Position numbers and translations under genes: made by a program. From Takakia lepidozioides (lineage: Eukaryota; Plantae; Bryophyta), in assembly GCA_030704615.1 (NCBI GenBank), contig CM060734.1, positions 31,248,001-31,312,000 on the forward strand: DNA of 64,000 nucleotides, given 5' to 3'. Every line of letters starts with the position of its first letter. The stretch's first letter is position 1. Shown piece after piece: positions 887 through 62,279 of the stretch. The notes below the pieces were generated by a model that did not search any database, was not told the origin of the DNA, and worked only from the letters and a program-made list of their open reading frames with translations.

Positions 887-1008
887 AATATTGTTGTTTA
901 TCATATTTTAATATTGTGTTTCATTATTAAATATTTGCGGTTTATAGAATATTGTTGTTTATCATATTTTAATATTGTGTTTCATTATTAAATATTTGCG
1001 GTTTATAG
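887..1008. repeat. Perfect 2 x 61-bp AT-rich tandem duplication
   Basis: AATATTGTTGTTTATCATATTTTAATATTGTGTTTCATTATTAAATATTTGCGGTTTATAG occurs at 887-947 and 948-1008. Confidence 0.95.
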
Positions 1009-18999: not shown

Positions 19000-21900
19000 A
19001 ACCCAAATGAATATCTTGACTAGCTAAAGTTGGGAAGGAATTGGGGTGTGGTTGTCTCTGCCAGCTGCCCAAAAAACTCCAAATCTGGTTTGGGTTCATT
19101 TGTCTTGTGAGTGGTGGAGAGAGGAAGGGGGACAGAATTGTCCAAAGACATTTTGGATCAAGTGAGTCAAAATTGCCAGCGTAGAAAGGATATGAAAGCA
19201 CAAAAGGCAGGTTGCAATGACAAAGAGACACAACTTTGTAGGTCATGCAGGCTGGTCCAGCTCATGTTTTGCATGAGGGTGTTTCTGCATGTGATCGATG
19301 CTTCCCAGGATGCAGCCTGTAGAGTTTAGTACCCTTCACAGGTAGATCTGGTAGATCCTTTTTCCTTTTTATGGCAATGAAGGAGTTTGGCTCAATGATC
19401 CCTATGGGAATGTGAGTGTTGTGGAACCTTTGCAGGGTAAATGCCTCAAGGGTACGGACTTAAGACAGATTGATTGACAGGATTTCATAGCTAAATACAT
19501 GTGATACCTGAAGCCTTAAGGCTGTTTTCTCCGATACAAAGTTCAAACTCTCTGTGAGAGTACCTACAGATTTGGATTCCTTGCAGATTGAACAATCACC
19601 CAGCCAGCTTTTAAGACAAACCCCCTTGTGGCGGAAACCATCAACCCACTGCACGTGTGCTGGCCTGGTCAGGCAAGTTTGACCAGTGATTAGATATCCA
19701 CAGCTCCAACTGGTAAACTCAGAAAGATGGAATAGAGAGAGATGGCATAAACATCATTAGTCAAGCCTGGTGTCAGACAGATACCTGGGCAAAAGTTTTT
19801 AGGTGGGAAAAACTGCAAATTAGCAGCACTGGTGATGACAGCAAGCCTGCGTCCTGCCTTTAATTCTTCTACCAGGTAGGCGGCAAAAGTTCATACTGGG
19901 CATTAGATGATCCTTGTCATATCTCCACCTGTTGCCATCGGACCTTCTTCGAAATCCTTTGATTCCTTGAGTGTTCACTGTTCCATAGCAAGTGGGAGGC
20001 TTGAAAGAGACAAGCTCAAACAGCAATAGCTGGCTCCAATATATTCGACAGGACACTGTGATGGCACTGGTGAAAGTTCATTGCCTTCTGTAATTTCACT
20101 CCAAGTATGTGGAATGGCGATAGCGGCAGCCAACTGTAGTTGAGTTGATCGGAGGGAGTGCGTGGTAACTTAGAAACTAGAAACAGGCAGGGTGCTCTGT
20201 GAGAAGGCTGTGTTCATTCACATTTTTACTATAACACTGCCCACCTTAAAGCGTCTTAAAGATATGCTTTAAAGTCGTTTTGGCAGCACAACGTGCATGC
20301 GTGATGTCTGCGAGCATGGCCCCCGGTTCCTTCATCTTCTGGCTGCCTCGTGTCTCTGCCCAGAAGGATTACATAGCCTGCATGGAAGCAGCAGGGCTGT
20401 AGATCAGGACATGGGGCTGGCAGGCTGGCACATGTATGGCCATTGCCATTCTCACTATATTGCTGCCTGGATTAGCCGAGGGGATATTTGGTCGGGCCCA
20501 TATTACGGATCTATGCTTGCTAACAGTTACTTCCGTCAGCAGCCAAGTGTCCTGAAGCGCAACCACTCATGCACCTGGCCACATGTCCTTGAGGTCGCTT
20601 CTCTCAAGCTATATACACAATGGGTAGTTCGTTCCTTGTACAGCTCTTGCATCTCCTACCCACCAAAGGGCTGCCTCGATTTTGTTCAATCGGCTCCGTC
20701 AGCAATTAAGCCCAAAAGTGAGATTTGGGCGATTTAGGAATTAGATTATTCCAAAAGCACGGTACTAGAGCTTCTGAAATCTCCGAGGGGCTAGTGTTTG
20801 AAGGTCCCCTACTTAGTAAGTAGTCCACAAGAGCTTTTCCTTGTTAATGTGAAGCTTGTGAAAATTGTTAGAACTCACAAAAAACTGAATACAAAGATTT
20901 GGAAGTGTGAGGGTCATTGCCACGTGAATGGGAGGAGTCCTGCGCAAGGTCGCCCATTCCTGGCAGGCTCTACGTCACATGCCGGCCTGAACATCCACGT
21001 AAGCGAACTGAGTGCTGCCCCGCTTCATTGAGCACCCTACTCTGTGGATCCAATCCAACAACAGAAAGCTAGAAAGGAATATTTCAAGGCATTTCTTGTA
21101 TCACACATCAGTCATGTCAAACCGTTAGCCGAAGATGGGCTGGAAGCTGCCGCCTTTCACCAGGTTTCTGTACCCAAATCTACTTCACTTGAATATTCCA
21201 GTTATCCTGGCACTACTCGATCTTCCTCTAAATTATCCCTAGCCATACGGAGATTATTGAATGCTCGACGCCATACTGAAAAATCATTGTGCGCATTTCC
21301 CAAGCTCTGACCGATAGAGGAGACGATAGACTACACCTAAGTTATGTAGTTGTCTGGGATGGCTTTGCCGGAATGCAAGCCCTGCTGCGTAGCATACAGA
21401 ATCCAGATGCAGGTACTGTTCCCATCTTCGTTCGATCGCTGGAAAATTGGACGTGTCCTTCTGTCAAATCTCGGGCGTTGTGCACAATTATTTCATGAAT
21501 ATGCAATGTAGCGACGCAATGCAAACTACCGCTTTGATTATTTTAAGAGTTACCCTTGATGGAGTAGAATACAAGCCAGATTGGCATGCTGTGGAAGTTG
21601 CTTATTCGGATTCCTGGCAGCACGCAACCAGACTTTAGCGCACGTTTTTGGAGTGAGGGGGGCCACCCTTCCTGTTCACCAAAGCCCAATCATTCCTTTG
21701 CTCTGCTATTCCAGCTCACGAGGATCTACTCGAGATTGGGGAACTTAAGCCCTGGGCAAGTACATGTTTTATTAAGCAGCTTGGGAAGGAAGAACAAATA
21801 CACCACATTATCATGTGGGTAACTTAATTCTCCTCGCTCGGCGGCAAACGGTAAGTACACTGAAACCGTCCAGATGTTGCGCATTCCACCTTCCTATGAT

Positions 21901-23021
21901 CATGCTGGATAGGCCATTGCAACAGCTGCATTTGCGTTCATGACATTGGGCCCCCAAAAGTTTCCATACTGCCTCCAAATCTTCCAGCAGCTATTCTGTA
22001 CCAACATCCGAAATGTTGGCAATAAATTATGTGATGGGTTCATTGGCTGCATCTGTGTGATGTGTTCTTCACACTTATCTCACACTAATCAGCCGCAAAG
22101 TAATGACCAGCGGTTAACAGGTGTTGAAGGGCTGGCGAGCCATATCGACAACATTCCAACTCTTATTCTGGGCTCTTATTCTTCTTCTTCCCCTAAATTG
22201 AGGTGATCGGTTTGGAGGGCCCACGTCAGACTCAACGGACTAATTCCGAAGAACTAGCCGGGCGAGGAAGACGCTTTGGTAGCTGCCAAACGTGTTGAGA
22301 CAGCAGTTTCTGATGATAGAGATCGCAATGACAGCCGAGCCAACATATGCATGGAGGTGGGTGGCCCACACTCCGATGGCCAACGACGTACCTAGTAACA
22401 AGAATAGCAGCGAGCCTCTTGATGCACACGTGGTGTGATGCAAGCCTTTGAATGCAGAGCTGGAAGGCTGTACTGCGGGAGTGATCATGTATCTCTGGCG
22501 GCTTGCTGTAATATCCACGCTGTTTTTGCGCTTCTTCAGGACTTTTGGTCTGAAATTTAGGAAAGTGCTCAACAACCCAAAGCCCACCTCTATTTGGAGC
22601 CGAGTCTTGGACACAACATACAACACCTGTTCCTCTATCTTCTCATACTTCCAACCGCTCGAAATTCTCTTTGCAAATATAGTGATTTCCCCACCAACAG
22701 ACCTGTTGTTTAGTTTTCTTTCTCAGTATTCTTGGGAGTACACTGTTTCATGCCATCTCACACGACAATTGAGACACTACTACTCTTAAATCCAGGAAAG
22801 TCCCCGGGTAAGAATTTTCCACCCACCTAAACCTTTGACCTTGCCAAGAACCCAGATGTTTACAGAGACCACTTTTGGAATGGAGCAGAATTCTCATAAA
22901 AACATTCATGGCTTGTAAATAACATGTTCCACGGAATCCCAATTCAGGAGTTTGTCCTGGGCATCTAGTGGCTTTGATGCCCAGCTACAGATTAGGTGGA
23001 AGATGTTGCTCTTGCGTCATA
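19000..23021 (-). mobile_element. Degenerate non-LTR retrotransposon (RT remnant); probably the target of the MULE insertion
   Basis: Minus-strand motif relics lie in LINE RT order and spacing: ITGIFK (~21200), FQPI (~21140), TQFAY (~21005), INKEKLLW (~20820), TEPIEQNRG (~20690), HLAADG (~20540). Many stops and frameshifts. Confidence 0.4.
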
Positions 23022-23030
23022 CTCGCAGCG
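23022..23030 (+). repeat. Target-site duplication, left copy (CTCGCAGCG)
   Basis: Identical to 37444-37452; 9 bp is typical of Mutator elements. Confidence 0.93.
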
Positions 23031-23098
23031 GGCAAGTAATAGAAGAGGCCCTGGAGTTTAATGCGCCATCAGCGGGGCTGCCTACGTGGCCCTCCCCT
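23031..23098 (+). repeat. Left TIR (68 bp perfect; imperfect similarity extends to ~23150)
   Basis: Exact reverse complement of 37376-37443. After a poly-C insertion the match resumes at CCCCCATGGCGGC and GTCGCCGCGA. Confidence 0.97.
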
Positions 23099-23586
23099 TC
23101 CCCCCCCCCTCACCCCCATGGCGGCTCCTGCGTTGGTCACGGTCGCCGCGACGGGTCGCTCCCCATCCGCCCGCCCGCCGCCCTCGCCCGCCCGCCTCCA
23201 TTGCTGCTTCAAACCCGTCGTACATGAATCATGTCACACAGCCATGCATGTTGAACATGTTCTATGTCACACAGCCATCATCCCGGAGATCCACATCACT
23301 CATGTAACACAGGCATCCATCATCACCAAGATATGACACCTCCACATAGATGCATGGATCGTCACACATCGATTCAAAATTCAAATTTGAACTTCTAAAT
23401 AAATATTTTAATCCATTGCACCGGATGATTTCTGTCATGTACCGGATGATTACTTTCGTACGGGCAATTGTCCACCTGTCTCCATCTTCCTCCTCCTCAT
23501 CATCGTCCTCAAAATTCTCCGGTCACCATTGTAGCAGCGTTTCACACTCGTGCATGCAGTGTGAACCCGACTGCTGCTGAAACGAC

Positions 23587-26424
23587 ATGTCTGTACATGA
23601 CAGAAGTGAAGAGTTTATCCTCCAAGCTGTCCCCCATCTTGTTTCGAATCTGCGAAATCAAGTGCAATCTCCGAACACAGGTGCTTTCAATCACAATGTT
23701 TTACAATGGCGCTATCAATGGCATGGTATCCCTCCCGGTGAAGACAACGCTTCAGTGGCCTACATTCCATGGAGTCGTGTGAATGATTTCATAACTGGGG
23801 AATCATCCCACCCCGATGGGCCATGCACTTTCCGCAAACATCGCCAAAGAGGTTGTCCACATGGATCACTCCTCCCTCCACGCACTAATAGTGCCTTAAG
23901 TCTAACAAGGTAAGACTATGTCAACTCCATGTAATACAGTACTATTTCGTGTCATCATTGGGGGCCCCTTGCTGTATGAGTCTTGGAGTCGCTCCATTGC
24001 AGTATGAGTAATGTACCATGGTTTCTTTCGTAGGTATCACTGCTCATATGGGCCAGAGGACAAGACGACTACCCTCTTGGAGGTAACCTCCGCCATGGCT
24101 GCCAGGAAATGGAAACCACGACCTCCCAAGAAGAAGGGGAGAAAGCCAAGACTTGTGGGATCTGCCAGCGAGCAAAAACCAAAACAAATGAGGACCACGA
24201 AAACGAAATCTGGGGAGGGCATAAAGAGGGGATGTGTATGTCGGTTTGTAGTGAAGCAATGCTATGTTGACCCTGAAATTGCAGAGTTGGTATATTACGA
24301 GAAGAGACACGTCAATGGAGCTGGAGAGATATGTCATGGGTTTGCACATGAAATTGGACGTGCTGCATTAGCTCCCCACGTCAGTGAAGACATGAAAGCA
24401 TGGGTAATGCACAACTTGCGGTTAGGGCTAAGCATCAACAAAATAATGGCGAAGTACATGCAGCGGGTAAAGGAGATGATGGATGCTGGATTGGAGGTCA
24501 ACCGTGATACTTTCCTCCTTTCATGGGACATCCGGAATATTGCCAACAAATGTGATGAAGAAACATTCAAAAAACACTCAAATGATGCACGTAGTGTCAG
24601 CATGTGGGTGGAGGCCAACCCACATAGTATTTTCTACTACCAGGAAGAATCGAACCACCCTGCATGGACTTCCAATGACAGAAAACTCGACCTCCCATTT
24701 GTGCTGGGCATACAAACTGAATGGCAGAAAAAATAGATGGTGAACCATGGACATTCGCGAATAGTGGCGTGCGATGCAACTTTCGGGACAAATGAAAAAA
24801 AGGTGAACATCATTCTGATGCAATGTGTATTAGAAGACCTGCAAATGTGCATTACATCATAACATGTACATTCCATATGCATGAAAGAATTTGTAACATC
24901 TGTTTTACATGATTGTTGCTGCAGTATCCATTGTACACCATGATGGTGTTTGATGAGTGGCTGAATGGAATTCCAGTCGCGTACATTATCATGGCTAGGT
25001 GCAAAACCAAATATTTGCAACCTTGGATGGAGGCACTGAACGACCAAATGAAAGCCAGGAAAGTCGACTGGCGCCCCAATGCGTTTATTGTCGACGATGC
25101 AGATGCAGATGCAGAAATTGCAGCCATTAGGTACCTGCAACTTTACAAAACAATTGCTTGGTCATTGCTTGCATGTAAATGTGTTTTATACTACTTGAAT
25201 CTGATAAGGAGCAGATGTGTGTGGGGGGATTGTGCAATTTTCCTGTGTTTGTGGCATGTGAGGCGAGCTTGGCAAAAGAATGTAGTCAGCAAGGTCAAAG
25301 ATGCAGCAGTACGGGCGGCTGTGTTATAGGACCTTACACAAATCATGTATGACAGACGAGACACCTCCGGGGATGCAGGTGAGGCATGGGCAGTATACAA
25401 GATAATTTCATTGCGGGAGAAGTATCCTTCTGAGACTGATTTCTGCAACTACATGGAGACCAAGTGGCTTCCCAAAGCTAAAATGTGGATCACCGGAACA
25501 CGGAACATTCCCCATGCCTCTCAAGATACTAATGTTGCCATTGAAGCTTATCATGGGATCCTTAAAGCGCAACTGAAGTGTACCAAAAGTGTCCTTACTA
25601 GTAGGCGGGTTGACTGGCTCATCTCAGAATTGACAGGTGATGTCCTTACCCATTATTGGTACATGTCTCATGCGAAGGCTTATGGATTTGTTCGAAACAA
25701 GCGGCAAGAGGGATTTATTTGTAGTTCCATATTGCTTGCCAAACACATTCCTGATGAGAACGTGACTCTGCCCGATACACCCGGAGGCCCCGCAAAAGTT
25801 GAATGTCATCGACATTTGGGTGACACGTTCATAGTTCACAATCCCGACTCAAAGTGGGCTTGCTGTGATTGCCCATGGGCCCTGAAAGGCAATATGTGTG
25901 CACACCAAGTCAAGGTTTTGAAGATGTTGCACCCTCATCTCGAAGATGGGCTCATTGCAAAGTTCTGTGGATCTCTCATGGGCACATCAAAAGGTGGCCT
26001 TCAGAATTTGGTGACAGGTTCACAATCCCCCTCCCCTCCATGTGCTCTAACTCCTCCAAATTTGAAATCCCCTTCTATGTCTGTAAAAAGCCCTCTTCAT
26101 CGAAGTCCTTTGCATATTAACCTCATGGCCTCAATTTCTACAGAATGGCAGAGTATTCTTGAATTGACACAGAAAAATGTCTTCCTCCAGCAACATCTGC
26201 TTGCCCTCGTGAGAGCTGCAAAGGGAAAGATTTTGGACTTGACTGCCATGATGGAGGAGGGCCTTCAATACCCTGGTGAAGAGCCAGTTATGACTGTTGT
26301 TGATGATGGGAAGGGAAAGTCCCTCGTACGCTTCAAAGACTTTTTGGAGAGGCATGGGCACAATCACAATGGCAGACCTGCACCCGCAGATTGTAGGACG
26401 AGGAAGAGGCTATACACAGGGTGA
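23587..26424 (+). pseudogene. MULE DDE transposase with C-terminal SWIM finger (~835 codons, 4 exons, two premature TAG stops)
   Basis: Exons 23587-23909, 24034-24802, 24925-25130 and 25215-26424 join in frame at GT-AG sites. Motifs: YHCSYGPED and KRGCVCRFVVK..H (WRKY/GCM1-like finger); ACDATFGTN (D); FIVDD (D); CLWH (CxxH); AIEAYH (E); CDCPWALKGNMCAH (SWIM). Stops at 24734-24736 and 25327-25329. Confidence 0.92.
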
Positions 26425-26675
26425 AAGGCATGAAGGTACTGCCCTACACTTCCTCAAATTCGGTTTGTAAAGTACAAACCTGATGCAGATCCACTGACAG
26501 CATGAGTTCGACCATTTCACTGTGCAGGGACAATGATGCCACCTCTCAGCAGGGGAGATAGAAGCTGTTGGATGCGTGCGCACATATATGCCTTGTCCTG
26601 GCATGTGAGCTCTCATATAGTTCCGTAGTTTTGAAATTATGTGTTAGGTACTCTCCCTACAATCACAATTTGTAT

Positions 26676-26819
26676 TGACTGATGCCTCTGCTGTTTTGAA
26701 GGGATTATACTCCCCGCTCTTCAATCCACATGCTATGGACTATGCTCTGACTGATGCCTCTGCTATTTTGAAGGGATTATACTCCCCGCTCTTCAATCCA
26801 CATGCTATGGACTATGCTC
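26676..26819. repeat. 2 x 72-bp tandem duplication inside the MULE
   Basis: TGACTGATGCCTCTGCT..ATGGACTATGCTC repeated with one mismatch. Confidence 0.93.
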
Positions 26820-27577
26820 TGGACGGCAGGGTTTACATGTTCAACGTCTTTGTTAGCAACATAATGTGGACCTCTTTCATCTCAGTTCAGAGTTTGTTTT
26901 CAAACATGCACCGGCACTCCATCGTAAACGTACATTATAATGTACAATTTCAATTACCAAGTAAGCCTTTGTTTCACATTCGACCAGATTTCATGTCAGT
27001 CGAGGATCAGTTTGTAACGTGCACTGGCACTCCCCTATAAACTGAAACAAATTAATGGACATCTTCAGTCATCAAGTAATATCCTCTTCCCTTATCATGC
27101 ACAGGTCCGTGCACCCCATGCACAACAACAATTGCTATGTATCCACAACGTGGTCATATTTGAACATGACACTTTTACATCAACACTAATTGGAAGTCAA
27201 CACCATGTTTTCAGCACACTGTAATTGCCATAAAATGTGGGATAAGCAACATATGTACACAAAGATCATTCTTCTACCACGTCAACCTGCTAAGGAAATG
27301 TTTGGCCCTCCGCTGGAATGTGTTTTTTCCCGCTCCCTATCATGTACTACATTCAGAATGACCTGACTCGAACTGACACAATATCATGAACCATGTAACA
27401 CATACATACATACAATTGATACATACATCGCAGCTCCATAAGTGGCACTAAGGAGTCCTGGATTCTAGGTCGTTTCTCATTTGCTTCTTTCCATCGCCCT
27501 CTCATTTCTTACTCCTTTGAGCTGCCCATCACATTGTGCTTCTGACTTCCCTCTCCTTGCAGTCCGCTTCCTTTTCA

Positions 27578-28305
27578 ATGGCCGACTTTACCAGTTCTTC
27601 CTCCATTCCGTGGCTACAGGAGCAAGCTGAGGTTGATGAAGACACAATGAAGGAGCTGTTGGGTGACCTTGGCGGCATGGGGTCCCGCATTTCCGTTCTC
27701 GAAGCTTTGGTGGACTGGTCACAACCAACAACAGGGGACATTATTCTCAAGGGACACGACTCTGCAGGTAGAGTGGCTTGGTGTGGTTTCTATGATGAAA
27801 GTACTATTGACTGTTCAAAGCTTCCAAACACGATGGTTCTGAGGTCCAAATTCTTGTGTGCCCCCAATGAGGAGTGGGGTCCATATCAACTAGGTTTGGA
27901 TCCAGACAAGGAGAATGAATGCTTTCATGTTCTCACTGTATTCCAGTGGATGGGCGGAGGTTGGGACTCCATCAAGCTGATTGACGCTCTTCCCTCCCCT
28001 ATTTGGAGGATGCTTCAGCGAAGGCATACACCAGATAGGCCATCGACTGCTGCTGGAGTGTCACCCTTGAGGGTGACACAATGCATGTGATGTTTGCATC
28101 ACATATGCACATGCCAAAGAATGGCTCGTCAGTTTTCCTGCGTGTTGTACCTGACTGGGGGGGCAACCATTTCCATCACTCTGTTTATTTCTTTCGTTGG
28201 GATGGGCGAGTTTGCGTATGGAAGGAGCGAATGGTTAGGCTGCAGGTGGATGTTCCTTCATATGACTGGAACTTCAAGGAGGTGGACTGGCTAGAGGCAG
28301 CATGA
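27578..28305 (+). pseudogene. MULE cargo ORF A, unknown protein (~240 aa, one frameshift)
   Basis: Protein-like reading MADFTSSSSIPWLQEQ..GRVAWCGFYDE..FQWMGGGWDS continues in another frame as HVMFASH..YFFRWDGRVCVW..DWLEAA*. Preceded by a pyrimidine tract and TTGCAG. Confidence 0.6.
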
Positions 28306-29042
28306 ACGTAAAAGCATTGCAGGACTGGAGTTTGACGTGTTTTGCATTGGGCCCGGGTTTGAAGTAGCACATGTGCATGGCCTAGGGGTCTGATTTCGGA
28401 TGTGCATGTGGATTGTCAAGTGTGAATAAAAATTCATGTTCAATTTCAGAAGATGAATTCAGGTGTGTAATCTACATGAAGTTTTGGTAAACATTGCCCG
28501 GCTGCATGTGTATCTGCATTATCACAGTTTGTTTTTGCCTTCAGTTTCAGTTTCGTTACTGTTAAACTCATGGGTGATACAATGTACCACCAATGTGAAA
28601 GTGAAAGGCAGTATGTATTTCCATGGTTTGGTTGTGAATATGCATATGGATGAAAAATGCATGTACATGTGAGACAGATGGAAAACGGTTGGTGACAGTG
28701 CCATTATGTAACGCACTTGTAACGCCTACACTGTCGGTGGCATGTCCCCGTCATTGTCTCGCCCAGGTTGTTGTCACTCTGGCCGAGGGTTCATGTAACA
28801 CAGGTTGTGCATCATTGGGAGGATATAAACGGTTCTAGAATAGACAGCTCTCGCACTTCTCCATTTCATTGTCTTCACTTTTTCTTTGTGTTGCAGGTGT
28901 TAGGGTCTTCTTGTACATCTCATATTATCAGTTTGCACTCTTGTTACTACTTCTGAATTTAGGCTGAGTTTGTGTTGCAAGTTCGAGGGTTGTCATCTTT
29001 GCAGTTTCCCTCACACTTTGCACAGTTCAGCTTCCATTGTCC

Positions 29043-29479
29043 ATGGATTCCACCCCAACATCCACTTTTCGCGCCAAGGTCTCTGAAATATTGTACAAAG
29101 CCCTCATTGCTGTTTCTGCCATGCCTTCTCACACATTCTTCAGAAGATTGAAACCGAAGCGGGGCAGGACAAAGTCTGGAATTACCACACTGTGGACTCA
29201 GTGCGCTGCATGACAGTTGACTTGGGGGCTTTGGAGTGCGTCTATACTATGGACGAGGAGGAGCAGTCAGGTGTTTTCCTTTGCCATGTTCTTATGGGAT
29301 TTGTGGACAAGCTCATTTTCAAGACATTCAAGTACTGCACCTCTTTGTTTGATGGGGAGGCCCCAGTAGATTGGGGTTATCATATCTCCCTGGATGCGGA
29401 TTGGGTGCAGGACCTGCTGGCACTCATCCCAGCCTCCATGCAAGGCATGATAGTTGTGGATCCAAGTTCAGATGTGTAG
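29043..29479 (+). pseudogene. MULE cargo ORF B, unknown small acidic protein (one frameshift)
   Basis: ATG at 29043 (MDSTPTSTFRAKVSEILYKAL) shifts to HILQKIETEAGQDKVWNYHTVDSVRC..DWVQDLLALIP..DPSSDV*. Confidence 0.45.
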
Positions 29480-30759
29480 TGTTTGAACATGCGGCTGTTT
29501 TTTCTGGCAGTTCTAAAGTCAGGCCATATTCTCACAGCAATGTGTAGGTGCTGTAGCTATTCTGTAACTCAGAAATGATGTACATGTTGTTTTGTCGGTA
29601 GAGAATGATTCATGTGGCACCCACTTTTCATTGAGGGTTTTCATATCACGCGCACATGTAATTGACGCTTCTCATGAGTTTCATACATGCACCTTTATGC
29701 TAAAATGATCAATAATCATTCTTCTCACTTGAACGTTGAAATACTTAATGAATCCTGGCCACGAATTTGCCCTCAAGGATTGTTTGTTTACATGCATATG
29801 ACCCTGTGTCTTTCCATGGCTCCACAAACCATGTACACCTGAAAGGGTGGTTTCCAGCAGTGAAGGAAATGGAGAAGCCATGCAACCTTTGTCCCCTGTG
29901 TCTTTGAACTGAAATTGAAATGACTTATCTCTCGTGCCTTTCATGTATTGCACATGGTATTACATACTTCTTCTGTGGCCAGTGCACATGTATAGCAGAT
30001 GGTCAAGGATTCTAATTCTGGTGCCAGTCCACACCCATCTTGAATTAGAGCATCAGGTCATTGCAGGTTTCACCAACTGTCATGTTTTTTACATACCACA
30101 GTGACGTATGAATTTTCGTATCAGCCTGCTGCCCTCCACAGTATGGAGAATTGTTTTTTGGCCACGTACAGGGATAGCATGATGACCACAATATCAGGTG
30201 GGATTGATGCCAACACATACAGATGCTTCAGATTTAGCACATATGCAGCCTTCCAAATGTTGCTGCTGCTCTTGGCTCCCAAACATGATGACTTCCACTT
30301 TCGTTTTAAAGTCCTTGAAAAAGCAAGTATGAATGGAAAATAAATAAAATAAACTTACACAGGTAAATGTACATAAGTGGAAGTATTTGGACAGCACCGT
30401 GGTCTGCTATATGGCCAAGTAGTCTACGAAAGTGCTCTCATATGTAATGCAGTGCATAAACTAGTCTGTCATGTATATAATTGAAGTACGGGAGCAGGTT
30501 TTTCAGTGCCAGGGTTTTGAAACGTGACATGTATTACATGTTATATTGGCGGGAAATCCCATTCGTTCGCTTCATGTAAAGAATCATGCAAACAACATTA
30601 TTTGTCTGCAGATCCCACCATTGAGGGACTCCGTCCTTTCAGTTCATTGCATTTTTTCTTGTCTGAGACGTTCTCCTCCTCATTGCATTCTGTGGTGTCT
30701 GAGACGTTATCCTCCTCATTTTCATTTACAGCCGTCATTTTCGTCGTTCTGTCTTTGCT

Positions 30760-31590
30760 ATGGCGTACACATCTGCCGCCACTGCTTCAGAGTTGAAGGT
30801 GGGTGTACAGGATGCACGAGACATTTCGGAATCCCTCCCGCATTCTTCCACAGGGACACCGACTGTTGTAAGCAACATTGTTTTTGGGGCTGGGATGCTG
30901 AAGCACATCTTGATTGAGGGCGTCATCCTAATGTACAAGCCGAATGCCCCGAAAACATATGGGGTCGAGTATGTCACAATGGGCATCCATGTGGGCATTT
31001 GGGATGTCATTGCCATGGCAGCAGAAGACAACGATTACCGTCTGGACAACACTATGAAGGCTCGCAAATCCGGGGACCATGTCTGGATGGAGGTCAACAT
31101 TCGGAGTGAGGACAACATATTCTGGATGGTGGAGGCTGATACATCTGGGGTGCTGGCCAAAATTCCAGTTTTGGATCTGAGAAGGCAATGTGCATTAGAC
31201 ATGGGGGTTGGAGAGACATGTGTCTTGGAATACGTTGCGCGAACCTTTGAGTGGTATGGTCCACAGACACTTGCACGTTGGGTGAACATGCACAGGCGGT
31301 GGGCTGCTTTTTTTGAGAGGAACCATGCTGCATGGGAATTCATCATAAGACCCCATGCACGCTGCCCTGTATGCATGTATCACTACACAAATCCTAATGG
31401 CAGCCATCGGGGACCTTACGATACATTGATCCACCATTGTGCAACATATCGCAGGTGTTGGAGGGTGGAGCACAAAACTTTGGCATGCATTATATTTAAT
31501 ATCCTAACAGAAGATGACATTCGAGCGGTGTATCCGTTTTTACCGTCAATGGACTATGCATATGAGTACGACTGGCTTGTCAATGGGTAG
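30760..31590 (+). CDS. MULE cargo ORF C, intact 276-aa protein with C-terminal zf-XS-like C2H2 finger
   Basis: Uninterrupted ATG-to-TAG ORF. RRWAAFFE..RCPVC-x17-HHCAT..RVEHKTLACII resembles the SGS3 finger pattern KWFKKFF..CPAC..LLAHART..KLHRELAEVL. Confidence 0.7.
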   Translation: MAYTSAATASELKVGVQDARDISESLPHSSTGTPTVVSNIVFGAGMLKHILIEGVILMYKPNAPKTYGVEYVTMGIHVGIWDVIAMAAEDNDYRLDNTMKARKSGDHVWMEVNIRSEDNIFWMVEADTSGVLAKIPVLDLRRQCALDMGVGETCVLEYVARTFEWYGPQTLARWVNMHRRWAAFFERNHAAWEFIIRPHARCPVCMYHYTNPNGSHRGPYDTLIHHCATYRRCWRVEHKTLACIIFNILTEDDIRAVYPFLPSMDYAYEYDWLVNG

Positions 31591-31751
31591 TTCTTATGTG
31601 AGTGAGAAGGCAATGCAAGAAAACATTGTTGTGTTGTTTGCTTCAGTTAAGAAGCACATGAAGAAATTTTCACAATGATGCACATCATTGTAGGCATGTC
31701 AGGATAGTGTGTATAATGAAATTGAGCATTGCAATGACAACACAAAACTTT

Positions 31752-33300
31752 TCATTTCAGTTTGCTGCGACAACTGTACCGAGTTCTGGTCCTAGGCTGC
31801 GAAAGGTGGGTAGCAAGGACAGCAGGTTGCACAGGGTCTTTAGGAACTCTAAGATATGGTGGTCGTGCATATGGGAGGCCATGTCCTCCTCCACCCTCCA
31901 ATTCTGCCATAACCAAATTGCGAATGTTCCCTCTCTTTTTCAAAGCAGCCTCAACGGGGAACCATTGCAGGTTCAGCTACAAACAAGTTCCTACACTGAG
32001 AAACTGCACCGCAAAACTATAGTAGGGGAAGCACGTTGAAAGCAATGGCCATGAGCACTTCAGCAAGCAAAGCATCCGTATTACAGTATTGGAGAGTGTG
32101 CTTACCGGGCCTGCGCCACCTGGTTTTGGGTTCACAAATGTTTCTTCCAAGTACACATCAATGTAATGAGCAGTAAACATGCCACACTCCCAGTTAGAGA
32201 CTTGTTGGGGCACAGGGGGGGTCATCCACCGCTTTGGGTGTGTGGCCTCTGTCCACTTTGGGTTTGGAGGGTATAATCCTCGCAGTACAGCCCACACTCT
32301 TGCAAACAAAGGCTTCAACATCTTGTGTTCATGCAGGCTTTTAATGCTATTGTAGTGAAGGTAGCGCTCGTGTTCCAAAATAAGAACACTCCAGTGGTTG
32401 CTACACAAAACATCACACCTTCAGCTTAGTCCTCATCAGGATGTGCATGAAATAGAACCCATATACACGAAAGTGATAGGAACAGAGGCAGGTTAAATGG
32501 AGAAAACTCACTTAAATGTAACAGGGACAACGAGCACTTCGACACCAATACAGTCAAGGGTAGGGAACCTTGTGTCCACCCAAGCATGTATGGAGCTGAC
32601 TCCGTTTCCAAATTTCTTGCAATGGGTGTGAAGACACATCCAGGCGAACATGTCTAGCACACGAATTTTACTGTACACATTATGTGGAAGGGACAATTTT
32701 TTGCAACACACCCAAAAGTCCATCACACGGTCACTTGTCCAGCCCCTTTCATCCACCAGATCATCTGCATCTTCTAGTCTAAGAGGGATCTGAGGGGACA
32801 ACGAATCTTGGAAGAACCAGACGTCCGTAGTCTTGCTCACCACTGCACCACAACAAATCCTGAACAGACCCCACAGAGCATGTCAAGTGGCTGCATGGAC
32901 AATGTAAGCAGACACTGCAGTTTCAAACAGGATTGAAGGTATACCATAAGATTTACGATAAAGAAGGGTGCACGGGCGTTGAACTCACATCACGTTTTCC
33001 ATCGCCTCATGAATTCTGCGCATCCACGAACACAGTGCATTATGAAAACAGCACAATGTGCATGACAGTTACATTGTATGGGCCAAAGAAACATGTGCAT
33101 GTGCAACGAATGCAAATGCATACCTGGACAATGATTTTTTCCCACGGGCTGCAACTACTTGATTATCGGTGGATGGAAGTTGATATAGCGGAGGATTGTC
33201 TGCGCTGGCAGGTGGAGTGGTATGGGTGGCAATGGGATTGGCAAAGGTAACAGAGCGAGAGCGTTTAGGTCCTTTGTGCACACTCCCATGCACATCACCA
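31752..33300 (-). pseudogene. Ulp1/C48-family SUMO-protease-like gene carried by the MULE (5' end uncertain)
   Basis: Spliced exons ~32842-32511 (GWTSDRVMDFW..VLVVPV) and ~32402-32106 (NHWSVLIL..YNSI..PQQVSNWECGMF). Catalytic His and Cys are present; the expected Asp reads Asn. Confidence 0.8.
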
Positions 33301-33319
33301 TCAAATCGTGCCGTGGCAT

Positions 33320-35946
33320 ATGTGCTGTCAGTTGATCAAGTCTGCTTTGCTTCAATCCACGACTAGAGAAGAGGCCAAACAAGCCTTTGTGGCAGCTTCT
33401 CTGATACTGAAATATGACATTGTCGTGCCCCCCAAACCTGCACCTGTTGCACGCCCAGGTCTCAGCTACCTCATGGACTACAATTTGTTGCCTGATGGGT
33501 TCCCTTCACCTGACAATCCCTGCTTTTTAGAAAGTCTTGTTGCACTTGTGGGGAGCGCGGAATTTGCTAATAGTATGATGGGTAAAGCGTATGGTCAATG
33601 GTTCGTCCGACGCATGGTAATACCTCTTCTAATCCTCTCCTGCACTGACCGCCCTCTTTTTTCTGTCATACATGTTTTTCCATCTGTGAGCACGCATTTA
33701 AGTCGTGGAATGGTCACGTTCTCCTGCATTTGTATTCCAACATCTATATTGTAAGGTTGTTCTTCTTGGAGGCACATGTATACGCATGTAGCTGAAGCCC
33801 GTGGCGTTTTCTTCACCATGCACATTGGTGTGAGAATATTGTCATTTACAACTCAAGATCTGCAGCACCATTGTCTTATATGCATTTGAATTTGAACAGA
33901 TTGTTTTGCATGGGTTTTGTTTTCATGCATTGTAATGTGCCTGTTTGGATTGCTTTTCTGTCCATGACCTTCATTATGGGAGGGGTCTGTTCTAATGTCA
34001 GTACAAATCTGTTTCATGGTGTGGTAGCAGCATGATGCACCACCGCAGGAGGAGGCACTTCTTCGCAAGACATTGGCGTGCTTTTCAATACGTCCTGGTT
34101 TTACTCCTGACCATGCAGCTCAATACGCTGAGTGCAATGATGTTGTCAAATACCACAAGTGCAGGGCTGCCATCATGGACTGTGACATGAAGGAGGTTGT
34201 TGCTCAGGCTGCATTGGAGAGTACAAGAACTCAGTTTGTGGAGGCTGGATTGCATAAATGGGACAGACAGGTCAATGACGAAATACATGAGAGTAAATGG
34301 GGCTGGTCCCCACTTTTCAAAATTATCAAGGCGGGTGACATCCCAGAGCTCTCAAATAATATGTTCACACATTCGCAGGAGGAAGCCCACATGTTCATGG
34401 CCATTTTGGCAGGAAGTCGAAACACAACACCACCTCCGAAAACACCGCAGTTCATGCGGGTTTTGCGTCTCATTTGGATGTGTCACGTTCAGAAGACAAT
34501 TCCCCTGTCCACACCAAGGAACTCTGTGTTGCGCGACCTCCTCCACCAACTTCTAGACACACCCGAGGGTCACGTGGCCATTACAAATGCAGCCAATAAT
34601 TTTCTTGAGATTGGATACTTTCTATATGGTTGCATGGCACCATACGAGCAGGCTCGAAGGGAGCTGCTGGACTCTGTGGCAGACCTTCTGGAGAGACAGA
34701 AAGACGACCAAGACCGCGCCATACAGTTGCTGCAGACTTTTATGCAGCAAGTCAGATGCAGGACTATCCGTGACCATGCCATTGTTAATCGTACAGCTTT
34801 TGAGGTCTTGTGGTGTGGAGGGGGACAACCAGGAATGGGGGTTGATAAAGCCATCCTTGAATTTACTGAAATGTTGAGGTATCGCGAGGACTTGGACATG
34901 GGGTGGCTTCCTTGCCCACCAGGTATGTCATTACAATGCTTTCGAATGTCCACGCTGCAAGATTTCATTGAATTAGAAAATAATATTGTCCACCATGTTC
35001 TCATGTGCTGAATCCATCCTTAACCCGGCCTCATGTGCAACATCTGCTTTGGATGTGTGCAGGCAGCTTCGACTATGGTGAATCCCCAGTGTTGCAAGCT
35101 TTGAAAAATTTGAAACACAATGCAGATGCTCTCATCACGGCCAGGCAGGGGGTGGCTGAAGCACGTTTTGCAAAAGCGGGTGGTGATGTTGGCAAGTGGG
35201 TTGTCATCCACCGACCGCATACACCACCCATCACAGCAAAAACCGCACACCTTGTAGACATCCAAGAGAATGCAAATATCGCGACACTGTGCAATGCTGC
35301 TGAGCTTGCCACCAAATCCATGCCTCAGTCAGAAAATGAAGAACATGAGGTGCAGCAGGCGGCGGAAACAGGTCCTCTCTGTCCCAGGACTGCAGGCATG
35401 CCCTCAGAGGGCAATATTGATGACCTTGCATCCACAACCAACGGTGGGAAAGCGATTGTGTGCCGGTCTGATGATGAGGCATCACGACTTCTGAGCCACC
35501 TCCCCGAACACCATGTGCCATTTGCTGAAGTCTGTGCCGACCTTCTTTGTCCGGAAACAGGTCCCCTGACTCAACTTGAAATGGACTTGTCTTGCAGTCT
35601 GGTATTCCCTGACTTTGATAGACCGCCTCCCCCTATGGGGTCTTTCACTTCATCACATAACTTTGTGAGTCCTCCCCCCATTTCTGTCTGAGATCCCACT
35701 GATGAGGGTGTAATTGTGCCTGCGGTAACCAATGTCGGGTCGTCTAGAACCCTTCATGGTGAACTGCTTGAACAGTATGATACGCAGCATTGGCACATTA
35801 TGGCCTTGCCCTCCCCCCTTCGTCGTTTCAAGCTGATTTTTTATGGTCTGAATACTCCGTCTAGAGTTGGTGCCTCTGTATGTGTCCTCGTTGGTGGGTT
35901 TGGTAGCATGGTAGTTTCCTTGTCCATTGCCAAGTCCCCCGCCTGA
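33320..35946 (+). pseudogene. MULE cargo gene D, large unknown mostly helical protein (one or more introns, one frameshift)
   Basis: Exon ~33320-33616 ends at a GTAATA donor. A 312-codon open frame at 34073-35011 shifts into a 228-codon frame at 35005-35691, which continues past a TGA to 35946. Confidence 0.6.
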
Positions 35947-37130
35947 AGAGGTACATGGGAGTCCTTAGCTGGTAGCCGCAAATGCCTCCTCCGCTTCATT
36001 TGTGGCTGAAATTGGTCTTCACCCCCACTGTCCTCCCGGCCCACCTTCGCCCGCGAGTTTTTGCGCGGCAGATGCCCATGGTCCTTCAGAATAGTCTCCA
36101 TCAACGCCCTCTGACCGGCTTCAAACACAGGGTACATTTTTAGTTTAGCCCCACCTTTCCCAACAGCAGCACACCCATTTATCCTGTGAACGTTTAATTT
36201 TTTTTGTCTTTATACACTGTTTACAGTAGATACATATGAACGGCTTCCTGTTATATCCCCGGGTTCATCAAGCCTTGCCTCGTGTGAGCCTCGCAAATCA
36301 GTGCTTCCCACTCATCAGTATCATATTCCTCATGGTATACCCGACGCGCTTCGAGCATGGTGGATTTTTTCACCATTTCGGAAGTACAGGTAGACAGCGT
36401 AGACCACTCCTGCCCTGAAGAAGCCGACGTTCATGTTAAGGCACAAACTGAGAGTGCGAATGGGTACTAACATGGGCCCTCACAACGAAGTATAAGCCAT
36501 TTCCATTCTGGTCGCCACCATCTTGTATAACCGAAAGAAGCCATGCATTTGGCACACGAAGAATGCATTGGAGGGAAGAGCAAGACATTGGCAACACAAT
36601 GCCAATGGGAACACAATGCGACGACGTAAAAAAAATCCACAAAACTCACATTAATCTCTGAACCCTAAAGACAGACTTATGGAGGCCTTCTAGCTTCACC
36701 TGCAACACGAGAATGATATAGGCAGATCAACAAAAGCTCCCGAGCATGAGAAAATGAAAAGGAAGGCGTTTCGGTATACGTACACTTCCTTCCGAATCGT
36801 GTTGCACAAGATCCAAGCGCTACTTACATGAAAAAAGCGGGCGAAGGGTGTGTAACCAAAGCAAATGAGAAACATGAAACAGGAAAGACTGACGCTGCTG
36901 AGAACCTCCTCCGAAAGCGCTTTCCTACGGGGCATATTTTTCACGGCACTGAACTTGCCACAACGTCTGCACATGATGTTTCCAAAACACGCACTACGAC
37001 ATCGATAGAGACGGTGGCATGGTTCAAGTGACGTGGTTGAGGAGAGACGTTCCCTTGCATATGAAGCGTCGCCTTCAGCGTGTCTGTAAGCAGCTGACAA
37101 TCACTTCCGCAAATCACGATCACGTCCTAA
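35841..37130 (-). pseudogene. MULE cargo gene E, unknown spliced gene read inward from the right TIR
   Basis: Minus-strand protein-like segments MLEARRVYHEEYDTDEWEALICEAHTRQG (~36360-36270) and KMYPVFEAGQRALMETILKDHG..KRRRH (36140-35841) are separated by T-rich introns with CAG acceptors. Confidence 0.4.
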
Positions 37131-37375
37131 TCTGTATGCAATTATGAACAATGCATGTATGAGCATGTATGAGCAGACATGCATACATGTGGGACGATGC
37201 ATGCATGTATGACAACCTTCACATATGGATGCATGCATGGTGGTAATACAGTTGAAGTAAAACCGTTTCATGTATTATGTGGGTGACGGCCTCACCGGGG
37301 ACGAAGGCCGGGCGGGGGAGACAGGAAGCCCAATCGCGGCGACTGCGGGCCCGCGGCGTTGCCGCCATGGGGGCG

Positions 37376-37443
37376 AGGGGAGGGCCACGTAGGCAGCCCC
37401 GCTGATGGCGCATTAAACTCCAGGGCCTCTTCTATTACTTGCC
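37376..37443 (-). repeat. Right TIR (68 bp perfect; imperfect similarity extends to ~37330)
   Basis: Exact reverse complement of 23031-23098. Confidence 0.97.
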
Positions 37444-37452
37444 CTCGCAGCG
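37444..37452 (+). repeat. Target-site duplication, right copy (CTCGCAGCG)
   Basis: Identical to 23022-23030. Confidence 0.93.
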
Positions 37453-40400
37453 TAGCAACATCCAGGATTCGGATGCCGCAAGCATTGGTACCATGCCTGC
37501 AGGCAGGCTTAATTAGTTTGCAATCTTGCAGGGCTTGGTGTGATCTGGTAGGCTGGGTTGGTGAAGTGAAGAGGGAGAGGGAAGCCGGCAAGGGTGTAGT
37601 TGTCAGAGCTCTCTGTCAAGAACGTGTAGAGAAGGGAGGGAGTCAGGCTACAAGTCAGCAGCACCCTTACTCATCACGTTTACCAACACTGTCTGCCCTC
37701 GTTACACCAGCTACTCCTGCATCAGGGTTACCTTACTCTGATCATCATAACGACGGCATTTCGGGTGTCTTTAGTGATCTGAACTCAATCGTGGTCATTG
37801 AAGGTGCTATCAAATTGAGCCTTTGTTGATAAGGTGGATTCTCACATTAGGATCCTTGATTCTTCATAACACAGTATTTCACGTGGAATAGATAGACTCC
37901 AAATTGGATTCAAACCCAAATCTATACGTCTTCGTTTTCTAAGGTTTTTGTACACACCATCAAGCCTCCGTATTTTCTATGGCAGCATCAATATGTTGAG
38001 AGTATTCATCCCAGACACCCAAGGCAGGCCCACAGTAGCTTTCGAGCTTCTCGAACGGGCCGAAACGACTAGACGCTGCAGAAACACAATGTGTTTGATG
38101 TTTTCTCTAAGAGGGCCACTCGTTGAGTAGTCCCACTACAACGCATCCCCACCAGATGCACAAATGTACCTTATTGCCTTCTACCGGCCAGCTGGGTCAA
38201 GTGGCCTACCGTGAGATAGGCAGACTCTTGCAGGCGTGTTGTAGCCTAGCCTGGGACTACTCTTTCAGTTGTCGAGTTCATGTGTCGCGCATTCTACAAG
38301 TCACTCTCGCTTATTATCCAGTACTCGGGTGGCTTAGATCAGGCTGGCGGAAAGTGAATCAGGAATAAAGATTACGCACTGAAGTGAAGCGAAGTTTGTT
38401 TGCAGGGCGGACGCCCTTCCGCGCCTAAAACACGAAACACTATTGAAGAAAGAAGTAGAGAAAATACAGAATTGCTGGCATGTCGCACACCACTCTTGGT
38501 GGGTTCCGGCTGGAGAGTTTCTTGCTAACAAAAGAATCACAAGAACGGTCTCAAGTTCAGAACGCGAGGAGGTATGCAAGCGAGCAAGCAGGATTGCGGA
38601 TGAGCCAGTACAGCTCCCGCTCGTGTTTTGTAAGCATTTTCACGGAAGCACTTCAGTTTTTGAACAATGTATGGATTGAAGAAAGGCATCAGACTGTACT
38701 GAGATACAGATCCATTGACAACATTTGACGCAAGTCCAGGCGATGACCACAGGTCCCGAAGCCATTTATTCTGGAAATGTGTGATTTCAAGATTTGTAGA
38801 GACGAATCTCCTCCGGCATATCCATGCTCCAAAGTGTTTAGCAGAGCAGAATACGAGAGTGATCGAGGGAGTGATCGAGAGCGTGCACCAATATTCTGCC
38901 AGTTAGACCTTTAAACAGGATGGCCTCCATAGATTGTGTGATTCCCGTCCAACCATACTTGTAGATTCAATTTGCAAGCTTCCAATATCATCTCCACATG
39001 AAATTCTGTTTACTCTTTGCAATCTCTGCAAACAAAAGTAGGTCCACATGCGACATACCAATTCTCCAGTAACACTACGTGAGAAGACGGATTGAGATTC
39101 ATATAATTCCGAGAGAAGAAGTTCCCCATCAGTAGTTCGGTGCTGCTTGCTAAGCAGGAGGACACTTGCTTCTTGCACAGCACTTGCTTCTTGGCTTGCC
39201 ATGGCTGGCTGGTGAGTGATCCTCTCCTCTTCTCTGCTATATTACTTTGTCTCCAGAGGTGAAGGCGCTGAAGGATGCATGAGAGAAGAGCACAGGTTGT
39301 CACTGCCATTGATGAGGTACACCTAGTTGCAGAGAGACCTGCTCCATATTCCACTATCACCCATCTCCATTCTATGGCTACAATGCATGGAGTTTTGTTC
39401 AATTGCAATCCAGTATTCGGTCTAAAACGACTGGGTAGATCCACTATGGCTTTGAGATTGTTCAACCTATACTCTGCTGCAGATAATTGCATCTCCAGAT
39501 TCTAGGCCAACAATCCAGGATGGCCCCAGTGTAAGCAAGTAAGAATGATGCTAAAGTAGGACAACTTCTTACAATGAGATATGGCTCCTGATCTTTGAGA
39601 ATGAGGGTCCATAAGTGTCGTACAGCAACTGTAACATCAACTGGGGTGATCTCTGGGGGTGGGTGGCCTGGTCAAAAATGCTTACTAGAGGCCATACGGG
39701 AGAAGCACAAGACCTGGTCCCATATTGTAGGACGTGAAAGAAACATTCGTGGTGGTTTTGAGATGATGAACTCCGGGATTTTCTCAAATGCCCGGGCTTT
39801 CTGCCTCAGTTGTGTTTGTTGGATCAACATGCTCTAAAATTGATACGGAGAAGAAGGTAAGTGGGCCACATGCCCACTGTGGGCGAGTACCTAAACAACA
39901 TTCCTGGAGTCAAACCCACTGGATAGTAAGCACAATGACCTGGCCCCTTATCATCAATAAATCATCAGACCTCAGCAAGAAAATTCCTGCCTTCCATAAT
40001 ACTCCACCAAAAAGAAAGATGGAGGGAAATCAATTTTTGAGAGATTTGGAGACATTATATGGGACTATCCACACCTTTTGAATCCGGCACTGTGGTGGCA
40101 CATACAAGCAAACACGCCAAATGTACATCAATTCAAGTAAGACTTTCTTACAGTAGTTTGATCATTGGACCCGGTCCTAAGGGAGTTTTCTCTGCCTTGG
40201 AGGGTCCGGAACGAGTACATCAATACTGATCCCAAGAATGGATATCACACACCTTTGTCATCAGGATGTGATGTCAAACAATCTTACAGCAACACCACTC
40301 TCTCACAAGCTAACAAACCCAAGTAGGAGAGAAACCGAAAAAAAAACATTCATTGAAAAGAGAAAGAAAAATTCAGCAGCTCTAGGATGTCAATGCGTGT

Positions 40401-61808: not shown

Positions 61809-62279
61809 ACCATTTGCAAACAAAATGCTATGTCGAAATACACAACTAATCAGCCTGCCACTTAGTGATCGGACCTTCGATCACCCCGATACGCTGCATC
61901 AAACCTCCCTGTCCCACAATCCTTGCATCACATAAGTATCCCGCATCCCGACCTCCAGACACTTACAACACACATATATACGTCCAGAATTTCGCCAAGC
62001 TCACCCCGCCTGCAGAAAAAGCAATGCGATCCTTCAGTCTCACAACGTTGCTAACCCCTCCTATCTCTCCATCCGGCTCGGAGCACAAGAAACACTTCAC
62101 ATGCGCATGAATCCGCATTCAAGCGATACAAATATCACAGCAACCATTCTCCTCTCCGTCTCCTCTTCTCCCTCTTCTCCCTCTTCTTCCTCCTCTTCTT
62201 CGTCGGAAGCGCCTCGCACATCCTGCTACCGCACGGTTTACCACAGCTCCGACACGGCTGCCCATCGACATAGCCGCGG

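Follow-up and report, generated by a model that had tools for sequence, protein, structure and literature searches.

Introduction

How many genes does a single Mutator element (MULE) in a moss carry, and what would those beyond the transposase be doing? This question is raised by a locus of Takakia lepidozioides lying in a stretch of 64,000 nucleotides which was analysed here as a whole (the window). An initial annotation had described it as a complete 14.4-kb unit with perfect TIRs and TSD, holding a transposase plus about six other genes which looked like a dedicated set rather than Pack-MULE scraps. The present analysis arrives at five genes instead of seven: the helical, Ulp1 and right-end reading frames are one gene broken by an inversion. 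We hold this anatomy, that is the ends, the transposase, the single-gene helper and its inversion relative to all relatives, to be highly probable. The helper gene, which joins a zinc finger to a SUMO protease domain, appears to be undescribed, and three extra genes have no known relatives in the databases searched.

Ends and state of the element

Between the flanking 9-bp TSD copies the element measures 14,413 bp (Table 1), and its ends are those of a Mutator element or MULE, for which TIRs and a TSD of 9–11 bp are characteristic. All 77 of the 77 pairs in TIRs and TSD are identical, corresponding to a divergence below 3.8%, and chance would place an exact 9-bp repeat directly outside both TIRs with a probability of about 4e-6. 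The left subterminal region contains three imperfect 29-bp repeats at 23217–23316, and a search of the element against Rfam yielded no match. Completeness holds for the ends but not for the genes: the transposase contains stops, a frameshift disrupts each of ORFs A and B, and the zinc finger exon is damaged. The element is genuine and belongs to a bryophyte Mutator family, but as a copy that is no longer functional.

Table 1. Features of the element, with positions in the window.
Feature	Position	Strand	Description
Left TSD	23022–23030	none	9 bp, identical to 37444–37452
Left TIR	23031–23098	+	68 bp, perfect, starts GGCAAG
Left subterminal region	23099–23586	none	CATGYA-rich (14/kb)
Mutator transposase	23587–26424	+	four exons, 835 codons, DDE, CxxH, SWIM
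72-bp tandem duplication	26676–26819	+	99% identity between units
ORF A	27578–28306	+	about 240 aa; one frameshift near 28030–28040
ORF B	29046–29479	+	about 145 aa; one frameshift near 29145–29165
ORF C	30760–31590	+	276 aa, intact
Helper 3' part	31752–33320	-	linker exon 33320–33124; Ulp1/C48 exons 32859–32512, 32400–32106, 31976–31752
Inverted helper middle	33320–35798	+	H0 exon 33320–33616; H1 helical domain 34031–34922; H2 + linker 35063–35798
Helper 5' part	35799–36376	-	C2HC zinc finger + low-complexity linker
Right subterminal region	37100–37375	none	richest in CATGYA (33/kb)
Right TIR	37376–37443	-	68 bp, perfect
Right TSD	37444–37452	none	9 bp

Transposase

The presence of a transposase was confirmed. 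Its exons (23587–23909, 24034–24802, 24925–25130 and 25215–26424) are separated by GT-AG introns, and D354, a D at about 420–421, CxxH at 444 and E543 are readable in the spliced frame, with a SWIM finger (C-x-C-x10-C-x-H) at codon 650 after the catalytic domain. The Pfam match to MULE is weak (E 0.021), that to SWIM has an E of 0.048, and identity to collinear relatives is 39–55%. The frame is not the intact one of an autonomous MULE, being interrupted by premature TAG codons at 24734–6 and 25327–9 (codons 342 and 471). The motif order is presumably that of At1g60560 and At4g13970, and the protein may be a mobile relative of these angiosperm SWIM genes, which are host genes without TIRs; a literature search turned up nothing on the resemblance.

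One helper gene in three pieces

One convergent gene of ~1,200 amino acids accounts for the right-end gene, the helical protein and the Ulp1 protease, which are its three pieces; its middle 2.5 kb is inverted in this copy. The 6-bp microhomology ATGTGC is present at both breakpoints, the low-complexity linker of the 5' part reads through the right breakpoint and joins H0 without a change of frame, and an in-silico flip at ATGTGC brings the minus-strand finger part and H0 into one frame. In the relative L074 a single ORF (6532–7917) matches the minus-strand finger of the window with its start (z 12.6) and the plus-strand H0 with its end (z 6.5), none of 1000 shuffles being as good in either case. 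Profiles built without the window recover H1 (E 7.5e-10), Ulp1 (E 1.5e-14) and the zinc finger (32 bits, 0 of 1000 shuffles); the first exon (N1) and H2 of the relatives gave no above-chance match in the window. For database searches the spliced models were used exon by exon, joined or X-bridged versions serving for frame checks and comparisons only.

The large helical protein of the initial annotation is thus the inverted middle of the helper and the inward-reading gene at the right end its 5' part; the outermost ORF there (37100–36699) does not score as coding and was rejected. The Ulp1 protease was correctly recognised (Pfam Peptidase_C48, E 3.5e-6 in the window and 9.4e-5 in L074). Its part of the gene is open over 354 codons and has retained the His and Cys, with Asn at the site of the catalytic Asp of the relatives. 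A TGA interrupts the H2/linker exon at 35689, and the zinc finger exon has acquired two frameshifts and one stop. For the helical domain the predicted fold is a weak model (pTM 0.33) with a best Z of 6 and no usable match.

In 14 of 14 distinct relatives the helical domain beside the transposase lies on the minus strand, and in eight relatives from a moss metagenome the order Ulp1-H-zf is complete and directed back toward the transposase; one of these eight has long open frames, L074 being the intact-looking relative. Between L074 and L001 dN/dS is 0.13 for the finger, 0.38 for H0, 0.25 for H1, 0.43 for H2 and 0.25 for the transposase. Conserved gene order and dN/dS below 1, proposed earlier as a check on the cargo, were both obtained for the helper (0.13–0.43), and the core of transposase and helper is under purifying selection across divergent moss elements. 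Because order and strand are conserved beside related transposases and selection is purifying, the helper appears to be a dedicated, old gene and not a host scrap. The family core would consist of two genes: the DDE/SWIM transposase and, convergent with it, a helper of several exons and about 1,200–1,500 amino acids in which a C2HC zinc finger, the helical domain and the Ulp1 SUMO protease domain follow one another, each separated from the next by a linker.

Three orphan genes between the core genes

The three tandem single-exon ORFs of the initial annotation (ORFs A, B and C) were borne out, all of them having coding-like scores on the plus strand. A 94-nt GT-AG leader intron (27469–27562) precedes ORF A, a TATA-like word and a GT-AG leader intron lie upstream of ORF B, and ORF C likewise has a GT-AG leader intron. 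A further ORF (30044–30340) was rejected by its coding score. No match was found for ORF A in Pfam, PHROGs, NCBIfam, PDB, IMG/VR and GTDB, for ORF B in Pfam, PHROGs, NCBIfam, PDB and IMG/VR, or for ORF C in ESM Atlas, PDB, phages, IMG/VR, GTDB, Pfam, PHROGs and NCBIfam. The C-terminal third of ORF C contains a finger-like motif (C-x2-C ... H ... H/C) resembling zf-XS at the motif level only, Pfam zf-XS (SGS3/IDN2) and solved XS protein structures giving no match at E up to 10; a single-sequence AlphaFold model (pLDDT 35) was too low for use. A viral origin of the three genes found no support, and their being tandem paralogues was rejected.

This lineage would have inserted the three intronless-CDS genes as a 5-kb block between the two 3' ends of the core genes, and they would be resident accessory genes, perhaps added counter-silencing factors. 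A plausible but doubtful alternative is that they are passengers which one sub-lineage acquired and which are now decaying, with only the two-gene core functional; they would then be a nested element, or fast-evolving genes of host or foreign origin that arrived by retro-copying or capture. The block is missing from all relatives found, in which 1.2–2.5 kb separate SWIM from Ulp1 vs 6.1 kb here, two of its ORFs are frameshifted, and its members are mutually unrelated (pairwise z at most 1.2). Against this, ORF C has no homologue, host-like or other, in 1.84 billion proteins (HMMER), the three resemble whole genes with leader introns rather than exon scraps, their spacers hold the word of the element (see below) at core-intron density, and an inner TIR or TSD flanking the block was looked for and not found, which led us to reject the nested element. 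The idea of a dedicated gene set is supported for the helper and not shown for ORFs A–C, absent from every relative found and without a homologue in the databases searched.

A word enriched in non-coding DNA

CATGYA is enriched (z 9.9 and 6.0), though less strongly than the motifs of VANC-type arrays, and occurs at about 11/kb in the non-coding parts of the element vs 3 in its coding parts and 1.7 in the flanks; CATGTA is present 33 times where dinucleotide shuffles give 6.6 (z 9.9, the largest null value being 3.8). The enrichment is visible only when non-coding DNA is analysed separately, a motif test on the whole element having missed it. The word is 6 bp long, alternates purines and pyrimidines, and is found in both orientations and free of tandem arrays. 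Decayed Sphagnum-type relatives showed no clear word.

Comparison with known systems

VANDAL elements (PMC5735166, PMC10398659) are likewise multi-gene MULEs whose non-coding compartments are rich in a short word. VANC motifs are, however, dense, oriented and tandemly repeated (PMC5735166) and VANDAL TIRs are degenerate (PMC10398659), whereas here the word is short, two-directional and array-free and the 68-bp TIRs are perfect. No sequence match to VANC, DUF1985, DUF287 or PMD was obtained, either in Pfam with the pieces from the window and the intact exons of L074 or in PDB, and fold comparison with the weak model (pTM 0.33) gave no usable match. A transposase beside a separate large gene ending in Ulp1/C48 is shared with the Kaonashi (KIU) MULEs of Arabidopsis and the Ulp1 MULEs of melon, rice and grapevine (PMC13317346). 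KIU elements are, in contrast, three-gene, non-TIR elements, and KIU is a eudicot VANC derived from MAIN/PMD (PMC13547354); the moss element has perfect TIRs, and a C2HC finger and an unclassified helical domain, with VANC homology not detected, take the place of the VANC fused to Ulp1.

Maize MuDR (mudrA/mudrB) resembles the element as a TIR element with a 9-bp TSD, a transposase and a second gene convergent from the other end, but here that gene has about 1,200–1,500 amino acids with finger and protease, and the two 3' ends are separated by three further genes. Pack-MULEs also hold extra genes within Mutator TIRs; unlike them the element keeps a full-length transposase gene, its core cargo is conserved under selection, and ORFs A–C resemble whole genes matching no known host gene in the databases searched. 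Ulp1 cargo is presumably also present in Rehavkus elements. These MuDR-like elements (PMC6446971) share the 9-bp TSD and large size and are set apart, by description only, by animal hosts, a PHD finger and minisatellite ends.

Possible role of the helper

Three features are circumstantial support for anti-silencing: the moderately enriched non-coding word, the C2HC finger, and a SUMO protease domain as in KIU-type VANC, the genes of which bear Ulp1 and demethylate motif-bearing relatives (PMC13317346). The helper may be an anti-silencing factor and a convergent counterpart of KIU-type VANC, which we regard as possible; the proposal is an analogy because homology to VANC/DUF1985 was not found. 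Its zinc finger would bind the non-coding word of the element itself, CATGYA here and GCAGAACA in L074, the Ulp1 domain would then strip SUMO from chromatin or silencing factors, and SUMO removal would keep the transposon family expressed.

It is somewhat unlikely that the helper instead acts in transposition itself, as a MURB-like or target-choice factor whose Ulp1 domain de-SUMOylates transposase or repair factors, with CATGYA unrelated to silencing and being a subterminal transposase-binding word or a result of RY-alternating bias. The word is indeed densest directly beneath both TIRs (14 and 33/kb), the MURA-MURB interaction shows that accessory proteins can act on transposase (PMC12973397), and VANC homology is not detected. 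CATGYA is nevertheless also spread through introns and internal spacers, those of A–C included, at distances of several kb from the ends, and other RY-alternating 6-mers, CACACA and TATATA among them, are not enriched.

The reading that explains the whole best, held tentatively and at slightly less than even confidence, is that of a dead copy with a two-gene core, the A–C block and a word-reading, de-SUMOylating helper. It is unlikely that bryophyte MULEs evolved a VANC-independent, sequence-specific anti-silencing system of their own, in which an ancient protein with finger, helical domain and SUMO protease reads a family-specific word, and that in this lineage a modular cassette of three novel, mutually unrelated genes joined it; the SGS3-like finger of one cassette gene could then serve as an RNA silencing decoy.

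Inversion and decay of this copy

The 2.5-kb inversion and several stops and frameshifts have killed both core genes in this copy. Errors of assembly or of long reads could account for the inversion and part of the frameshifts, the real copy then being less damaged; one finger frameshift does sit in a run of eight A, and the ends are flawless. This is improbable, since the in-frame TAG and TGA of the two core genes are substitutions of the kind that methylated plant repeats accumulate and not indel errors, and two stops per 835 codons are compatible with up to about 2% neutral decay. Seven separate genes, with a helical gene that normally lies on the plus strand in this family, are very improbable, as the helical block, despite intact GT-AG introns of its own and a plus-strand frame open over 605 codons, starts at the breakpoint without promoter space and overlaps the Ulp1 5' exon, finger and H0 form one exon in L074, and no relative has this orientation.

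Significance

Being dead and rearranged, this copy is a poor reagent, and its own contribution is the orphan three-gene block A–C. Published work places anti-silencing of the VANC type in eudicots only (PMC13547354) and calls it unknown what Ulp1 domains do in plant transposons (PMC13317346). The moss family appears to have kept a helper with finger and Ulp1 under selection, in elements that have diverged deeply and of which each has a non-coding word of its own. With L074 apparently intact, this family opens both questions, the range of VANC and the role of Ulp1, to tests in Physcomitrium or Marchantia.

Structure and state of the element

The perfect 68-bp terminal inverted repeats (TIRs) and 9-bp target site duplication (TSD) of the initial annotation were confirmed, the 9-bp direct repeat lying directly outside the inverted repeats of an element of 14,413 bp. 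The transposase, likewise borne out, was read as 835 codons in four exons with GT-AG introns, the host being a plant with spliced genes. In the transposase frame the three catalytic residues (D, D, and E) can be read, as can CxxH and a SWIM finger. Pfam matches to MULE and SWIM are weak, and the protein presumably resembles At1g60560/At4g13970. TAG stops interrupt it at codons 342 and 471, and the copy in the window cannot move autonomously. The flawless ends bound divergence since insertion to less than 3.8%, which would fit either a fairly young insertion that has since decayed or a copy mobilised late in trans.

Features of the window and of related metagenome loci (L handles)
Feature	Position	Strand	Remark
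Short hairpin (29-bp arms) and exact 61-bp tandem duplication	683-798, 887-1008		AT-rich DNA; possibly end of another element
TPR-repeat host gene	9181-11321	-	First exon long, Gly/Ser-rich
Element flanks	20000-23021, 37453-39500		Decayed ORF-like DNA, no Pfam match; perhaps an older retroelement, insertion target of the MULE
TSD	23022-23030, 37444-37452		9-bp direct repeat, adjoins both TIRs
TIRs	23031-23098, 37376-37443		68 bp, perfect inverted repeats
72-bp tandem duplication	26676-26819		Very recent (one difference), just 3' of transposase
ORF A	27578..28306	+	One frameshift
ORF B	29046..29479	+	One frameshift
ORF C	30760..31590	+	Intact
Peptidase_C48 match	32420-31980	-	Clear (Pfam)
Hexamer ATGTGC	33320-33325		Switch point
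Complement of ATGTGC	35793-35798		Switch point
Finger region	36376-36090	-	X at two frameshifts
SNF2/Helicase_C ORF	41211-42518	-	435 aa, Pfam E 5e-18, about 4 kb from element; DRD1/CLASSY-like by eye
LINE-like fragments	47941-48887	+	zf-RVT E 1e-4
DnaJ (ERdj3-like) gene	60141-61823	-	Introns few or none; possible retrocopy
Apparently intact relative	L074:1-9402		Transposase and finger-helical-Ulp1 exons open
Inverted duplication of zinc-finger exon	L001:13106-14037		309 bp, 91%
Closest transposase found	L004:395-1576		52% identity, Logan run SRR15431198

Relatives in metagenomes

A search with the C-terminal ORF of the transposase yielded five proteins of 43-55% identity, and a profile scan of metagenomes, which we take to be moss-associated, yielded 68 loci used for comparison of the cargo. 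Among these only the Ulp1 and the helical ORF of the element were matched. All relatives found sit on eukaryote-type contigs, and several loci form TIR-bounded units of 10-14 kb. When gene order was mapped with profiles made from the relatives alone, it proved constant, with the transposase on the plus strand and, on the minus strand pointing back at it, a first exon, the zinc finger, H0, the helical domain H1, H2, and the Ulp1 exons. Loci with the transposase plus H1 or Ulp1 form 20 clusters at 95% DNA identity (8 at 78%), and H1 is on the plus strand in none of the 20.

Reading frames in the ENA contig L074 (coverage 31x) are long and open throughout; the contig is apparently an intact relative and the best candidate for experiments. 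In locus L001 the zinc-finger exon is doubled, an ATGTTCT word forms 14- and 23-bp tandem arrays, and no Ulp1 part was found. In six loci (L016, L017, L058, L059, L064, and L069) nothing is left but the transposase and the first helper exons with the finger; they are internal deletion derivatives. The L004 transposase came out as sister to that of the window in a quick tree; its contig ends before any cargo could show.

One helper gene, probably split by an inversion

The initial annotation had listed a right-end gene, a large helical protein, and a Ulp1 protease. The protease domain stands, by its clear Pfam match; the division into three genes does not, as L074 holds one ORF of 462 codons whose beginning matches the minus-strand finger (z 12.6) and whose end matches the plus-strand H0 (z 6.5) of the window. 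With the relatives-only profiles H1 of the window was found on the plus strand (E 7.5e-10) and Ulp1 on the minus strand (E 1.5e-14), as was the finger, which scored 32 bits, a value reached by 0 of 1000 shuffles; for H2 and the first exon no match between window and relatives rose above chance. When the segment between the two ATGTGC hexamers is reversed, the linker following the finger joins H0 in frame, and the inverted segment can be read as three exons with GT-AG introns, giving 641 codons with one stop, besides 354 open codons in the Ulp1 exons. The second junction requires one more frameshift, somewhere in the low-complexity linker. The L074 ORF, the switch points, the in-frame join, and the exon structure together argue for a single convergent gene of at least 1,190 codons in place of the three, probably disrupted in the window copy by a 2.5-kb inversion.

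Selection acts on this gene. Its dN/dS lies below one in every part compared (finger 0.13, H0 0.38, H1 0.25, H2 0.43), next to 0.25 for a piece of the transposase, all from the single pair L074 and L001, synonymous sites being saturated against the window. The finger has the spacing C-x2-C-x12-H-x5-C, and its best PDB match, a C2H2 finger, is below significance (E 0.51). The L074 protease is nearest to the Ulp1-like SUMO protease 6dg4 (E 0.004); the catalytic Asp of the relatives is replaced by Asn in the window. The helical domain had no match in Pfam, PDB, or Atlas, and AlphaFold with a 30-row alignment gave a weak, all-helical model (pLDDT 60, pTM 0.33) which yielded no usable structural match.

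Orphan reading frames and a non-coding word

The gap between SWIM and Ulp1 measures 6.1 kb in the window, where it contains ORFs A, B, and C, versus 1.2-2.5 kb in the relatives. That these three tandem ORFs are coding-like was upheld by a codon-position model, in which each is positive per codon in its own frame (A +0.21/+0.09, B +0.18, C +0.07; known genes +0.06 to +0.20, off-frames mostly negative). A pyrimidine-rich GT-AG stretch which looks like a leader intron precedes each ATG. Mutual comparison ruled out that the three are relatives of one another. ORF A resembles an F-box-associated propeller piece by eye, supported by none of the tools used. ORF C had no relatives among 1.84 billion proteins or in the other libraries tried; its C-terminal Cys/His motif resembles zf-XS, with neither a Pfam nor a PDB match.

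In the non-coding DNA of the element, counted separately against dinucleotide-preserving shuffles, CATGTA occurs 33 times versus 6.6 (z 9.9, null maximum 3.8) and CATGCA 34 times versus 12, their joint density being about 11 per kb (coding DNA 3, flanks 1.7). CATGYA peaks beneath the TIRs, and copies also lie in introns and in the spacers of A to C. L074 has a different and sharper word, GCAGAACA, abundant in its non-coding DNA (26 versus 1), and decayed AT-rich relatives have no clear word. VANC targets are tandemly repeated, oriented, and dense (PMC5735166), whereas CATGYA has neither orientation nor arrays, and its enrichment therefore supports a VANC-like word only partially.

Possible function and relation to known systems

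Ulp1-bearing MULEs are already known, and a literature search found no paper on a bryophyte family with a finger-helical-Ulp1 gene. Membership in VANDAL or KIU was rejected because VANC, a derivative of MAIN, is confined to eudicots (PMC13547354), because VANDAL elements have degenerate TIRs (PMC10398659), and because VANC homology was looked for in the element and not found. The closest working analogy to the helper is the KIU-type VANC proteins, in which recognition of a motif is paired with a Ulp1 domain whose function is unknown (PMC13317346).

The element has Mutator ends, a transposase of the cut-and-paste type, and a conserved second gene. The finger would tether the helper protein to the element, where it might act via de-SUMOylation. 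An anti-silencing function may tentatively be proposed on this analysis, and a role as transposition helper is somewhat less likely.

The apparent crowd of genes at this locus is in part an artefact of the inversion, and the locus also contributes a helper gene conserved across species and an orphan block of three genes.
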